From Bugula neritina (taxonomy: Eukaryota > Animalia > Bryozoa), in the NCBI GenBank assembly GCA_964035545.1, contig OZ037768.1:2326741-2390740 (forward strand): a DNA stretch of 64,000 bases, in the 5' to 3' direction. Below are positions 28,143-61,146 of this stretch, piece after piece. Position 1 is the first letter of the stretch. Each line of letters opens with the position of its first letter. The translations under genes and the position numbers were made by a program. A model generated the notes under the pieces. It did no database searches, had not been told where the DNA came from, and saw only the letters and a list, made by a program, of their open reading frames with translations.

Positions 28143-31100
28143 CTACAAACAAACACAGTGTGTTGCTGGGCAGTAAGGATTATCATAGTTGCAGTTGACT
28201 AAGCACCACTGGTCCATCAGGGGATAGTCATAGAAAGGTGCTTTTCCAGCGCAAACTTTTATCATTGGAACACCAGCAGATGGAGCTTGTGTAATTGGTG
28301 CTCTTGTGGTAGTTCTAACTGTAGTAGGTCTAAATGTAGTTGATGTGGTTGTTGGCATGTTTACTTCTGGCATTTGTATTTTTGGTTTGGTTGCTGGAGC
28401 CAAAGCTGGTGCCGGAGTATCTGGGGCTAGAGTAGCTGGGGCCAGAGTAGCTGGGGCCAGAGTGTCTGGGGCCAAAGTGGCTGGGGCCAAAGTAGCTGGG
28501 GCCAGAGTAGCTGGGGCCGGAGTTGCTGGTGCCATAGTAGCTGGGGCCAGAGTAGCTGGGGCTGGAGTATCTGGGGCCAGAGTAGCTGGTGCCGGAGTAT
28601 CTGGGGCCAGAGTAGCTGGGGCCAGAGTAGCTGGTGCCGGAGTATCTGGAGCCAGAGTAGCCGGGGCCAGAGTAGCCGGGGCCAGAGTAGTTGGGGCCAA
28701 AGTAGCTGGAGCTGGAGTAGCTGGAGCCGGAGTGGCTGGGGCCGGAGTAGCTGGTGCCGGAGTAGCTGGTGCCGGAGTAGCTGGTGCCCCAGTAACTGGG
28801 GCCGGAGTGGCTTGGGTTGGAGGAGCTGGGGCCGGAGTAGCCGGGGCCGGAGTAGCTGGTGCAACACCAAAGTTATTTGACAGCAGCCTGATATCTAAAG
28901 TGAGTCTTCTGTTGAGAGGGAAGCCAGCTGCAAGCACAAATGTGTAAACTTTTAATAGTTGGTAATGCATATTGGAATTTTAGAATGTTTTAGACAGAAC
29001 AATTGATTAAATTCTGAACACAAAACCCACTTATAGAACTGTTATTAACTAATGTGTCTCTATATCTTTAGTTTTAAATTTGCCTGTGGTCACAAAATAT
29101 TAGGAAAAAGTATAGAATTTTAGTTAATTTAATCTGAAAGGCTCGAACAGCCTTTGAAGAAGGCATCTAACAATTGCTCATTACCAATAGTTGGACAAAT
29201 TACTTTATCCTGGTGATTAGATAATGCAGGTGTACTGAGAAAATTATAAGCAAAACACATGCTAGAAAGCAGCTTTTATAATGCGAAAAACTTGATGAGG
29301 TTATTTATTAGGACATAATACTGTCATTTCGACTAAAAATTGTAAATGCGTAAGTACATCTCAATCTCTTAGATTATTAGGATACATTAGCCTAAGCTAG
29401 CAACTTAAAAAATAATGTCAAACTTAGTGTACTCACCATTGTCTATGTCAGCAGTGACAAACTCAGGAGGCATCAGCACTCTTCTTCCTTCTCCAATACA
29501 CATGCTATTAACTCCCCACGTAAGTCCCTTCGGCACTTTTTCACTCCCAACTTGGAACTTGAATCGTCCGCCCCTGTTATGAATAAAACCAAATAATCGT
29601 TTGACGCTATGCTCTACATCGCCTACGCAATTTGTTGAAACATTTTTGATGAGGTAGCGACTAAACTGTCAAAAAAGATAACCATTTTAAACATTTGAAG
29701 TTATATAACTCAATACGACATTAAAACGTGTTTGGCATAGCTATATATACTAAACTATTTTGAGCTCCTTATGAAAAAATATGCCCAACGGTACCTTTAA
29801 TGCATTTTACTTCGTAGATTTTAGTTCATATTTCATTCTGTTATAATAACAAAAACTACTCTTACTGAAGTCATGATTGCACTTACACATTGCTTCCTCT
29901 TTTGCCAGTAACCGATTCTCCAGAATATTCTATTTCCAGAATATCATTTCTAAAAACCTGTTTATCAGAGCCACAGGTTGGTCCATCAATCTTTACGTAC
30001 TGAAGTTTTCCACTCACTATCTCCACAAGCTCAGCATCAAACACCAGATCAGTGTTGGGTGGGATAGTTGTTCCTGCACGCCAGGAAAAGTATTTCAATA
30101 CAAGTATGGTTTTATTTGATGTAATGTTTCAGATTAGCTTTAAAAGAATAATCTTGTAACTAATTTAAAAGCAATTTAAAGCAAGTGAGCATGATTTTCA
30201 AGTATACGAGCAATTAACAATTGGTATTTTTACTTGAAATCATTACAACTTCAAAATTTACAAGAGACCAAAGGTTTTGCTGCTCCTAAAACTTACCACG
30301 GCCTTGGCGACCATATCCTAGCAAATGGTGAACTTTTATTTTTCTAACTTCTCCTTCACACATATCAAGAAGGTTCATGTCCAGACCCTGAATGGCGTTT
30401 CCTTCACCTACTGTGAAGTTTAACGTAGAATGCTCATATCTAGAAAGACAAGGAAATTATGCAGATCATGATGAATAACTGTTATTTCTATTGTACATAT
30501 ACAAGTTATTATCAACAGCTCATAAATTAAAAACTGACACCTTTAGAATTAACCATAAACAAAACTTTATATCTAAAGTATTTGATGATAAATAAAAACT
30601 ATTTAGTGTCAGAACTAAGCTAAATTTATAACCATATCAGACTTTCCATCTAAAGTTAAAGTTGAACAAAATATAAACTCCCTGAAAAAAGTGAATAATA
30701 GTTTAAATTAATTTACAATAAACACTAATGATTTAGAAGAGCTGTATAAACTAGCATAAAAAGTGAAAAATTAAGTAACATTATTAGTACTATATAGCCT
30801 CAATATATCTACTCATTAATTGTATAGCAAATATTTTCGGCTAAGTATGAAAATCTTACGTGCTCCAAAAAGGTGCGCCGTTGCTAAGGGAGCCATTATA
30901 ATGGAGCCTAATAGAATCGCCAGGGACAGTCTTTCTGATGCAATTAGCTGGTTTAGAGATAACTGTGTGTCCTGTGGGGCCATTCCAAGTATCGTTCAGT
31001 ATGACCTCAAATATTAGCTTTGAGTTTGGTGGTATTGAGCCTGGAATAGAGAAAGTTTCACTAATGCTGAAAGCCTGAAACTAACAACTCGTGACAAACT

Positions 31101-31853
31101 ACCAAATAGTTGCAGTTGAATGAGTAAGAGGAAACAGAAATTTGTTAGGCAATGGTGATTCAAGTTACTCACTGACTTGTCTGTTGCCATAACCGAGGGA
31201 TGGAGGAATTGTGATAACACGACGCTCTCCCTTACACATTCCTTTCATTCCCATGTCCATACCAGTAATGACAACACCGGTCCCAAGGTAGAAATTGTAA
31301 GTGCTGTTCCTTGAGTAACTGTAAAAAACCCAACAAATAAAAACATCACAATAAAACTAAATACATAAACGTGTTCATCAAAACATATTAAAATAAGTTA
31401 GGATGAAGCACATTTATACATGCTTTCTAAATATCTTGTAGTACTAAAATCGTGAAGCAACCTTCTATATAGCCCTGGCTATAGTAAGCAGAATGGGCTT
31501 TACATTCTGTAGTAAAACTAACAAGAGGCTGGCTTGCGAAAACAATGAGTATTATGTTTTAACCAAAGAGAACTACTTTGAGAAACTGACGCTTACCTGG
31601 AATCAAACATGGTTCCATCCACAAGTCTGCCGACATAGTGTTGATGCACGAAGTCTCCAGACTTGACTTTTGGTGTTCTACCATCCCAGCATGAGTTTGG
31701 CACCCAAGTCTGTTGAATTTTAAATCCCGGTCTATAGTTTTTAGTAAATTCAATAGGGTCAATGAGGTCCAAGTGTCTCCATTCAGCAAACTTACTTGAA
31801 GTGAGAGTAATTGCAGCTGCCAGCAGCAAACCAACCACACAGAGTCTACCCAT
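28143..31853 (-). CDS. Secreted FKBP paralogue (FKBP-B): signal peptide, 3 FKBP domains, Pro/Ala/Thr mucin-like stalk, C-terminal 6-Cys putative chitin-binding module; about 611 aa
   Basis: Exons 31597-31853, 31173-31318, 30860-31040, 30297-30439, 29887-30073, 29437-29573, 28143-28927. Internal exon sizes 146/181/143/187/137 mirror FKBP-A (146/181/146/187/137). The last exon runs LTLDIRLL into (PATxA)n and then CAGKAPFYDYPLMDQWCLVNCNYDNPYCPATHCVCL*. No HDEL. Confidence 0.88.
28389..28863 (-). repeat. Coding 15-bp minisatellite encoding (P-A-T-[L/P]-A)n
   Basis: Recurrent GCCAGAGTAGCTGGG / GCCGGAGTAGCTGGT units on +, about 30 pentapeptides. Confidence 0.9.
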
Positions 31854-60400: not shown

Positions 60401-61146
60401 GGTTGAAGACTACAGATATATATATATTGGAATATAGGGCACTTGATGGCACTGCCAAATAGCTGTTACAGGGCACTTTCTTACAATGCCAAATAACTGG
60501 GATGTGTAAGTTTGACAGATTTACTTAAGTAAATCCAATATAAGAAACAAACTGAAAATTCACTTTATTTTTATATTTAATTTAATCTCCTAGTTTTCAG
60601 TGTAAATTGATAGGCCAAGTGTTGGAATTGCTAATAAGTCTTAAAATAGAGATTTTTCCAAAACTGCGCCCAAATGAAGCTGCACCACCCAATTGATTGA
60701 TTTGTTCTATAAAAATATAAAGAGGCTACCCTTAAGTTATGTAATATGTTTTACTAAACCATTCAGCAAAATTGCAGCTTACAAAGGTCTAGGAATTTCT
60801 AAAAAGCCTAAGTTACATTTTTATGAATGATTTGAAATAGACCTAGACCTAGGAGTTGTCCCTCTTCACCATTCAGCGCTGGCAACTGTTGACACTAAAC
60901 ACTAATCACTCTTAAATATTAGTCACAGTGCTGTCAATGCATTTCCTTTTGCTCAATATCCTTTTAACAGACCTTTACACTCTATTGGTAACTCTAGAAT
61001 CTAGATAAAATAACTACAACAATGTGATCAAAGTTTAAATGACTAAACTTACTTGCGTGTTTGAAACCATGAGAATATATGTAATATGTTAGAAAGAGAA
61101 AGATGGCCAAAGGAAGTATGCACTTGTACTTTAGATGAAACTTCAT
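54467..61146 (-). CDS. Carbohydrate sulfotransferase, CHST11/HNK-1ST family (Sulfotransfer_2), type II Golgi membrane protein, about 346 aa
   Basis: Exons 61053-61146, 58522-58651, 57826-58009, 56669-56809, 55991-56210, 54467-54738. N-terminal TM segment; 5'-PSB motif IAKVASTSW; 3'-PB motif FVRDPWKRLVSVYKDK; also DPHYRPQ, GKLEDL and YKWDVMLYGY. Confidence 0.88.
56252..56568. repeat. Long pure (TG)n microsatellite in a sulfotransferase intron
   Basis: Seen directly in the sequence. Confidence 0.97.
57723..57850. repeat. 24/31-bp tandem repeat spanning a sulfotransferase splice donor
   Basis: GCACTGTGACACTTACTTCAAGGT, 4 copies plus a partial one. Confidence 0.85.

Follow-up and report, generated by a model that had tools for sequence, protein, structure and literature searches.

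An FKBP gene with an LPMO-type tail beside two AA15-type LPMO genes in the bryozoan Bugula neritina

We have found an FKBP gene, FKBP-B, that ends in a tail of the type carried by animal AA15 LPMOs and lies beside two such LPMO genes, LPMO-A and LPMO-B, in Bugula neritina. The analysis covered a 64,000-nucleotide stretch of contig OZ037768.1, hereafter the window, to which all positions refer. The FKBP-B chimera is real, both its gene structure and its transcription having been observed, and to judge from sequence it appears to be the new item of the locus, an FKBP with an LPMO-type tail. The original prediction was that four genes here form a chitin and extracellular-matrix remodeling cluster, in which unrelated enzymes acquired one Cys-rich tag. 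We consider it probable instead that the LPMO tails are inherited, that FKBP-B is a duplicate of the adjoining gene FKBP-A with an LPMO-type tail, and that the sulfotransferase gene of the locus is a plain neighbor.

FKBP-B occupies 28143..31853 on the reverse strand and encodes 611 aa in seven exons (31853-31597, 31318-31173, 31040-30860, 30439-30297, 30073-29887, 29573-29437 and 28927-28143), which were delineated using spliced RNA contigs, a frame check and FKBP_C matches. The introns are in phases 2,1,2,1,2,1 and are all GT-AG, and the exons, when joined in a local frame check, give an intact 611-codon frame with no internal stop. The predicted FKBP with a secretion signal was borne out, in that three exons match FKBP_C (PF00254; 59.6 bits in exon 2, 42 in exon 4 and 34 in exon 6), exon 1 gives a further 21.7 bits, and the N-terminus is signal-peptide-like. 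In having FKBP_C domains in tandem after such an N-terminus, FKBP-B answers to the FKBP9/10 type of ER FKBP. Neither a C-terminal EF-hand pair nor an H/KDEL-type retention signal is present in the protein; its C-terminus consists of a linker plus a 6-Cys module and ends V-C-L. The terminal exon, read on the reverse strand, begins with the last beta-strand of FKBP domain 3 (28866..28927, assigned by homology to the beginning of exon 7 in FKBP-A), continues with an Ala/Pro/Thr linker (28404..28859, assigned by TRF and composition) and closes with the module (28146-28268, assigned by alignment; C-x15-C-x3-C-x6-C-x4-C-x-C), which forms the last residues of the protein. The linker comprises 30.4 copies of a 15-bp unit (TRF) that encodes A-P-A-T-L/P, a pentapeptide, and beyond this array lies a short unique spacer rich in Thr. 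A length variant of this linker occurs in RNA run X8.

All six splice joints of FKBP-B are covered by spliced contigs from the RNA libraries of four studies. The last joint (29442->28928) is bridged in X14 and X8, and matching loose ends are found in X1 and X2. The depth of these contigs gives neither expression level nor tissue. They are 90-99 % identical to the window, and the 31 differences that were checked comprise 18 synonymous and 13 non-synonymous changes with no disruption of the frame. Alternatively, the chimera could be neutral or in decay: a duplicated FKBP gene that lost its proper 3' end and is transcribed without a selected function. FKBP domains 2 and 3 have diverged at ligand-contact positions, as read from the sequence, which fits such decay and makes catalysis by FKBP-B uncertain; the branch leading to the module is long; and an orthologue of the tail was found nowhere else in the protein collection by a word search with a length window of 143-455 aa, which would miss a full-length 611-aa protein. 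Decay is nonetheless very improbable in our judgment, given the intact frame, the canonical splice sites, a module that retains all six Cys and the conserved Pro of its family and has a confident fold model, and the occurrence of transcripts in four studies, in lineages whose sequences differ by 1-10 %, with the synonymous and non-synonymous changes counted above and an undisturbed frame.

FKBP-A (16830..21285, reverse strand) is a parental-type paralogue in which Pfam and exon comparison identify three FKBP domains, two EF-hand exons and a C-terminal HDEL. FKBP-A and FKBP-B are collinear exon for exon, the start of exon 7 included, and the start of the FKBP-B terminal exon aligns locally to the FKBP-A exon 7 start with a score that 0 of 2000 shuffles reached. 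Because the last FKBP strand is still encoded at the head of the FKBP-B terminal exon, the two parts were joined within that exon, and the intron of phase 1 ahead of it is an inherited FKBP intron. Phase-1 introns do precede the terminal exons of FKBP-B, LPMO-A and LPMO-B, as had been proposed (on the evidence of spliced RNA contigs for FKBP-B and of annotation P0002 for LPMO-B), but they fail as a sign of exon shuffling. The one in FKBP-B is the third phase-1 member of a native, periodic 2,1,2,1,2,1 series, and no intron at all precedes the linker in Bugula LPMO-C or in annelid and mollusc LPMOs. We propose that FKBP-B was born by duplication of the adjoining, ER-resident FKBP-A and that within exon 7, directly past the last FKBP strand, the part coding for the EF-hands and HDEL was exchanged for a 30-unit Ala-Pro-Thr pentapeptide array and one LPMO-type module, probably copied from the 3' end of an LPMO gene. 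The product would have kept its signal peptide and lost ER retention, and should be secreted; a resident ER foldase would thus have become a predicted secreted protein by a single 3' replacement.

Alignments confirm the five predicted module copies (1+2+2) on FKBP-B, LPMO-A and LPMO-B, with all six Cys invariant. LPMO-A carries module 1 at 46237-46344 and module 2 at 46354-46458 on the forward strand, and LPMO-B carries module 1 at 48409-48516 and module 2 at 48295-48399 on the reverse strand, all assigned by alignment. Two independent profiles located six copies in the whole 216-Mb genome, all on FKBP-B and three LPMO genes (LPMO-A, -B and -C), and since five of these six lie inside the window, their clustering is not due to chance. 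A degenerate DNA pattern (W-C-x3-C...C-x-C) was also run genome-wide and was useless, being swamped by (TG)n microsatellites. FKBP-B lies 12-20 kb from four of the five other genomic copies, which argues for a local, DNA-level origin, and local capture of its tail is plausible. A module phylogeny, which had been suggested as a check, was constructed from 95 rows and 47 columns; it put FKBP-B on its long branch and does not discriminate among groupings for that module, and a clade of the FKBP-B module with the local module-2 pair was not rejected (AU p = 0.40). The layout of the FKBP-B tail, with a single module, a long loop and a long 15-bp array, is closer to that of the distant LPMO-C than to those of the local LPMOs. 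No relics of an LPMO catalytic domain were detected near FKBP-B by tblastn of 22-32 kb.

LPMO-A (43463..46479, forward strand) has about seven exons, with the terminal exon at 46133-46479, and was delineated from sequence only. LPMO-B (48274..51676, reverse strand), with its terminal exon at about 48620-48274, was delineated from sequence and from GenBank protein P0002, which covers exons 6 and 7; the internal exon boundaries of both genes are heuristic. The two are inverted, tail-to-tail duplicates that can be aligned through their introns. The public B. neritina annotation breaks the genes of this locus into fragments. Assignment of both LPMOs to the AA15 type held up: exon 4 aligns with the Thermobia AA15 structure 5MSZ (E 0.0015), including the copper histidine of A-x-H, and exon 2 opens with G-H-G-Y, which supplies His1, right after the hydrophobic signal-peptide exon 1 and lines up there with the H-G at the beginning of LPMOs from molluscs and annelids. 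When the window was scanned with Pfam one exon at a time, neither gene was matched directly; their homologues carry PF03067. The description of the linkers as Thr-rich suits LPMO-B (Thr 29 %) but not LPMO-A, where Thr reaches only 10 % and the linker is Ser/Lys/Asn-rich; the FKBP-B linker is 30 % Ala, 26 % Pro and 22 % Thr.

The idea that unrelated enzymes gained the same tag is upheld for FKBP-B, whose module is that of the LPMOs. It does not extend to the LPMOs themselves, which did not gain the tag locally: AA15 followed by a linker and 6-Cys repeats is an old, widespread and published architecture (PMC9156745, PMC12955341). The tail of LPMO-A and LPMO-B, a linker and two 6-Cys repeats, is probably inherited, as insect group I LPMO15-1 and the LPMOs of molluscs and annelids are built on the same general plan. 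LPMO proteins with the module occur in Haliotis, Mya, Solemya, Biomphalaria, Elysia, Potamilus, Nucella, the annelid Paralvinella and the bacterial Oligoflexus.

The carbohydrate sulfotransferase said to follow the LPMOs is indeed there, as a type II protein with a Sulfotransfer_2 domain (PF03567) and an N-terminal membrane anchor. Its gene (54467..61146, reverse strand, assigned by Pfam and a hydrophobic exon) has coding pieces at 61146-60997, about 57960-57799, about 56750-56640, about 56150-55977 and 54760-54467. The piece at 61146-60997 is the hydrophobic anchor exon, and three exons match PF03567 in order (positions 66-103, 121-179 and 177-252), the 66-103 match scoring 31.6 bits against a Pfam cut-off of 22. 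Its membership in a cluster did not survive, as it has no module and nothing ties it to FKBP-B or the LPMOs; it is presumably an ordinary membrane-anchored neighbor.

These results bear on the possibility that the four genes are a co-regulated chitin and extracellular-matrix remodeling cluster, with the tag spread by intron-mediated (phase 1-1) shuffling of exons and with a sulfotransferase that acts on that matrix or on the mucin-like linkers. Such a cluster would account for the physical closeness of five of the six genomic module copies and for the phase-1 introns ahead of all three terminal exons, and Thr/Pro linkers are plausible substrates for O-glycosylation and hence sulfation. We nevertheless regard it as quite unlikely. 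The FKBP-B intron is native and the fusion point lies within the exon, the LPMO tails are inherited and lack a preceding intron in LPMO-C and in other phyla, the sulfotransferase is without a module, and about 11 kb without recognizable coding sequence separates FKBP-B from LPMO-A. Open frames of at least 48 aa in the gaps at 31.9-43.4, 51.7-54.4 and 61.2-64 kb were inspected by eye and showed nothing gene-like. A synteny check, which is a weak test because of small flanks and distant taxa, also went against the cluster, with no FKBP or Sulfotransfer_2 gene within 10 kb of the module-bearing LPMOs of Paralvinella, Haliotis and Elysia. We find no evidence for a working gene cluster, and the reading with inherited LPMO tails, a duplicated and re-tailed FKBP and a plain neighbor is preferred.

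Beyond Bugula, the module is carried by at least 214 cluster representatives, yet it has no Pfam model. Its partners are mainly LPMO_10 and GH18, the latter on chitinases, and further partners are Sod_Cu, CHRD, ShK, LDLa and EGF. No FKBP domain was found among the best 150 of the 214 module-bearing proteins (100 scanned with Pfam). An AF2 model of the FKBP-B module (pLDDT 87) predicts a small, disulfide-rich strand-helix-strand fold in which the helix carries C-x3-C and the last strand C-x-C. Its best match in the ESM Atlas is an arthropod LPMO_10 cluster (TM 0.76, 1.4 A over 41 residues), which supports homology of the module to the group I LPMO15-1 repeats, and a cnidarian GH18 cluster is matched as well; searching the Atlas by sequence features gave no usable match. 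Comparison of the model with the PDB by Foldseek and VIA-align recovered no similar solved structure, as expected for 41 residues, and the module profile matched no PDB sequence.

The module might alternatively be a protein-protein, oligomerization or defensin-like antimicrobial knot, and what FKBP-B has in common with the LPMOs would then be a protein partner or a defense role rather than a chitin address. The Cys pattern (C...CxxxC...C...CxC) recalls cysteine-stabilized alpha/beta peptides, the predicted fold agrees with this reading, non-chitin partners occur too, and neither the modules nor the terminal exons match any Pfam entry, CBM families included. We consider this unlikely, however, as the main partners are chitin-active and follow the classical arrangement of a catalytic domain, then a linker, then a small terminal domain, no structural match to defensins or to any other solved fold was obtained, and the insect papers call the repeats a conserved motif not related to CBM14. 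Across phyla the 6-Cys repeat follows Thr/Pro linkers in LPMOs and GH18 chitinases, and it most likely serves as a chitin- or matrix-binding anchor. On this view FKBP-B would be a prolyl isomerase or chaperone tethered to the matrix on which the LPMOs sit.

It is tentatively hypothesized that FKBP-B works outside the cell as a prolyl isomerase or chaperone, having arisen from an ER foldase lineage through a captured LPMO anchor, and that it acts on the chitinous zooid cuticle, beside the LPMOs, in folding or remodeling Pro-rich matrix proteins. If FKBP-B is indeed on the cuticle, it would be a first example of an FKBP directed to a chitin matrix, and nature would have provided an experiment in which the 6-Cys repeat acts as a portable targeting device. 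That an unrelated enzyme borrowed exactly the LPMO tail argues that the repeat is an autonomous, portable address, and FKBP-B and LPMO-B provide two natural constructs bearing on chitin binding by the module. A published list of bivalve domains associated with biomineralization includes FKBP and PPIase domains and offers no explanation for them (PMC8382897).

The closest known system is insect group I LPMO15-1, in which AA15 is followed by two C-terminal 6-Cys repeats of the form C-X15-C-X3-C-X6-9-C-X4-C-X1-C (Qu et al. 2022, PMC9156745; PMC12955341); neither paper assigns a function to this conserved motif. LPMO-A and LPMO-B resemble it in having a signal peptide, AA15 with His1 and A-x-H, a linker and two tandem repeats, and their C2-C6 spacing of x3 / x4-6 / x4 / x1 is close to that of the insect repeats. 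Against the published motif, the C2-C3, C4-C5 and C5-C6 spacings of LPMO-A/B match, whereas C3-C4 is 4 in repeat 1 and the C1-C2 loop is shortened from 15 to 7-10 residues; C1-C2 is 13 in LPMO-C, and the FKBP-B module fits the insect motif fully. The bryozoan gene differs further in its head-out, tail-to-tail duplication and in the extra phase-1 intron before the linker. From insects to bryozoans, animal AA15 LPMOs have conserved this 6-Cys repeat. Among small Cys-rich domains, X473 of Saprolegniales AA15, GH18 and GH19 proteins (<40 residues, six conserved Cys, proposed to bind chitin; Sabbadin et al. 2021, PMC8393829) is likened to the module by description only, as both are small, have six Cys and lie C-terminal to AA15 LPMOs and chitinases, but X473 is reported as restricted to Saprolegniales (PMC8393829). 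CBM14 (peritrophin-A) and CBM18 (hevein) are likewise disulfide-rich and terminal, behind Thr/Pro linkers on chitin-active enzymes; the module differs from them in its Cys spacing and in having no Pfam match, and the LPMO15-1 repeats are stated as not related to CBM14 (PMC9156745). FKBP-B itself is like the FKBP9/FKBP10 (FKBP60/65) type in its signal peptide, its tandem FKBP_C domains and a G-M/L-D motif that replaces the Trp of FKBP12. The adjoining FKBP-A has the full FKBP9/10-type set, including two EF-hands and HDEL, whereas FKBP-B, with three domains, has neither the EF-hands nor HDEL and ends in a mucin-like array and an LPMO-type module.

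FKBP-B is a transcribed chimeric gene in which an FKBP ends in the six-cysteine (6-Cys) C-terminal module also carried by AA15-type LPMOs. Its model spans seven exons and stays open through 611 codons (intron phases 2, 1, 2, 1, 2, 1). The joints at all six introns, which have GT-AG ends, are present in RNA-type library contigs from four studies; the last joint (29442 to 28928) is bridged by contigs in sequencing runs X14 and X8 and matched by loose ends in X1 and X2. Protein searches were run exon by exon, and exons were joined only for frame checks. FKBP-B is collinear, exon for exon, with its ER-type paralogue FKBP-A, which lies 7 kb away (21285-16830, minus strand) and combines three FKBP domains with two EF-hand exons and HDEL at its C-terminus. 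At its start, the terminal exon of FKBP-B aligns with the opening segment of FKBP-A exon 7, a segment that encodes the final strand of the third FKBP domain; none of 2000 shuffles attained the score. The fusion point thus lies a few codons within the exon, and the replaced portion is exactly the EF-hand/HDEL part. Because HDEL has been lost, the FKBP-B product is predicted to exit the ER.

The FKBP-B contigs from RNA libraries diverge from the window by 1-10%. Decay of the chimera is argued against by the nature of these differences: among 31 checked from those listed, 18 are synonymous, 13 are non-synonymous and none breaks the frame, which is intact throughout. In domain 1, most features of FKBP-A are retained; domains 2 and 3 have diverged. 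We infer that FKBP-B is a secreted, tethered foldase. FKBP and PPIase domains are listed among bivalve biomineralisation-associated domains (PMC8382897), giving some precedent for a matrix FKBP.

The five module copies of the original prediction (1+2+2) were recovered in place, and their six cysteines are invariant. They form the C-terminal ends of FKBP-B (one copy on the minus strand, 28146-28268), of LPMO-A (two on the plus strand, 46237-46344 and 46354-46458) and of LPMO-B (two on the minus strand, 48409-48516 and 48295-48399). The B. neritina protein P0002 (GenBank KAF6024662.1) is 100% identical to LPMO-B in module 2 and 92% in module 1. The description of the preceding linkers as Thr-rich holds for LPMO-B (Thr 29%) but not for LPMO-A, with only 10% Thr; the FKBP-B linker, in which a 15-bp unit for A-P-A-T-L/P recurs 30.4 times, is 30% Ala, 26% Pro and 22% Thr.

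A phase-1 intron does precede the terminal exon in all three genes (3/3), as predicted, but its reading as a sign of exon shuffling did not survive. Since the FKBP-B terminal exon starts with FKBP sequence, its phase-1 intron belongs to a set of three homologous FKBP-domain introns, of which it is the third, and is native to the FKBP. LPMO-C, a third AA15 LPMO gene, has no intron before the linker, a single exon covering the AA15 end, linker and module, and LPMO genes of Paralvinella, Haliotis and Elysia likewise hold the AA15 end, linker and all modules in one exon. Among the LPMO genes compared, the intron ahead of the linker is therefore peculiar to the LPMO-A/LPMO-B pair rather than tied to the module.

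No Pfam model matches the module. When 1.84 billion proteins were searched with a profile built from the six Bugula copies, 214 cluster representatives matched at E <= 0.001. A Pfam scan of 100 of these matches gave LPMO_10 in 15, GH18 in four, CBM_1 in two, and Sod_Cu, CHRD, ShK and others singly; FKBP_C was found in none of the 100, and local BLAST of the FKBP exons against the 150 module matches listed returned no match. The module occurs on LPMOs of Haliotis, Mya, Solemya, Biomphalaria, Elysia, Potamilus and Nucella, of the annelid Paralvinella and of the bacterium Oligoflexus. The Oligoflexus tunisiensis LPMO (P0102 / P0183) has two copies, which may reflect transfer between animals or protists and the bacterium. 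Modelled by AlphaFold from 95 homologous modules, the FKBP-B copy (pLDDT 87) is predicted to form a strand, a helix with C-x3-C and a last strand with C-x-C. No solved structure resembling this model was found; its best match in the ESM Atlas was a mostly arthropod LPMO_10 cluster of 1020 members (TM 0.76, 1.4 A over 41 residues), with a cnidarian GH18 cluster two rows below. On chitin-active enzymes the module is a small Cys domain at the end of the protein, set off from the catalytic domain by a linker; this classical arrangement suggests a putative chitin or matrix anchor.

In the 216-Mb genome, a narrow (A2) and a broad (A4) profile each detect six copies of the module, the five in the window (G000:C4:2326741-2390740) and that of LPMO-C. 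The FKBP-B module lies at a distance of 12-20 kb from four of the other five; such placement is very unlikely by chance and favours local capture at the DNA level. In the module tree, FKBP-B sits on a long branch whose placement lacks resolution; it does not group there with the local module-2 pair, yet such a clade is not rejected (AU p = 0.40). The tail layout closest to that of FKBP-B is found in LPMO-C (859-1641 of sequence L003, at about 17.195 Mb of G000:C4), 14.8 Mb from the window genes on the same contig, which ends in 25.7 units of a 15-bp A-P-T-T-Q repeat and one long-loop module; both tails have just one module, with a long loop between C1 and C2, and a 15-bp array of 26-30 units. 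No LPMO catalytic relic was found near FKBP-B. Two weaker AA15-like exon matches on another contig (G000:C2:13270922-13271029 and G000:C2:32756996-32757112) have no module nearby.

LPMO-A (43463-46479) and LPMO-B (48274-51676) are inverted, tail-to-tail duplicates with 1.8 kb between stop codons, alignable across several introns. G-H-G-Y opens exon 2 in both, directly behind the signal-peptide exon, and LPMO-B exon 4 is enough by itself to match Thermobia AA15, whose structure is solved (5MSZ), with the copper histidine of A-x-H within the match. Amino-acid identity by exon is 58, 92, 96, 79, 93 and 60%, the N-terminal and module exons being most diverged, a mosaic that fits mid-gene gene conversion or faster change at both ends. 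A 15-bp-period repeat in the intron ahead of the LPMO-A terminal exon (45896-46057) reads on the minus strand as an H-N-T-T-Q array and yields spurious protein matches to Thr-rich linkers. The public B. neritina draft contig VXIV02003329.1 (L013:1-20949) matches window 38492-53895 at only ~70-89% DNA identity, so that the genome studied belongs to B. neritina in a broad sense or to a sibling lineage. Two of its stretches match window 49408-47018, and this additional LPMO-B-like 3' part indicates that array copy number differs between assemblies or lineages.

The fourth gene (61146-54467, minus strand) is a sulfotransferase, as predicted: Sulfotransfer_2 matches are collinear over three exons, one above the Pfam cut-off, and the gene begins with a hydrophobic anchor exon. 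Its proposed membership of a chitin/matrix cluster was not borne out; it has neither the module nor any other tie, and we treat it as a neighbour. Inspection by eye of the 11 kb that separate FKBP-B from LPMO-A showed no gene-like frame, and, in a weak test on the spiralians Paralvinella, Haliotis and Elysia, the 10 kb around LPMOs with the module held no FKBP or sulfotransferase. A cluster at this locus is not established. The original observation stands, and its interpretation in part: the FKBP carries the LPMO module, while local gain of the LPMO tails and the shuffling intron fall away.

The FKBP fusion merits a bench test. In insect group I LPMO15-1, two 6-Cys repeats of the form C-X15-C-X3-C-X6-9-C-X4-C-X1-C lie behind the AA15 domain and are stated to be unrelated to CBM14 (PMC9156745; PMC12955341); the FKBP-B module fits this formula exactly. 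As this tail is already described in insects and widespread on LPMOs, from molluscs to an annelid and a bacterium, the LPMO tails were inherited rather than gained locally. The Bugula LPMOs may act in cuticle-chitin turnover, as an analogy to RNAi phenotypes in insects (PMC9156745) would suggest. X473, a six-Cys domain on oomycete AA15, GH18 and GH19 enzymes (PMC8393829), may be the same domain as the Bugula module. The LPMO part of the locus is a further member of an already known architecture, and the FKBP-B fusion is a new variant.
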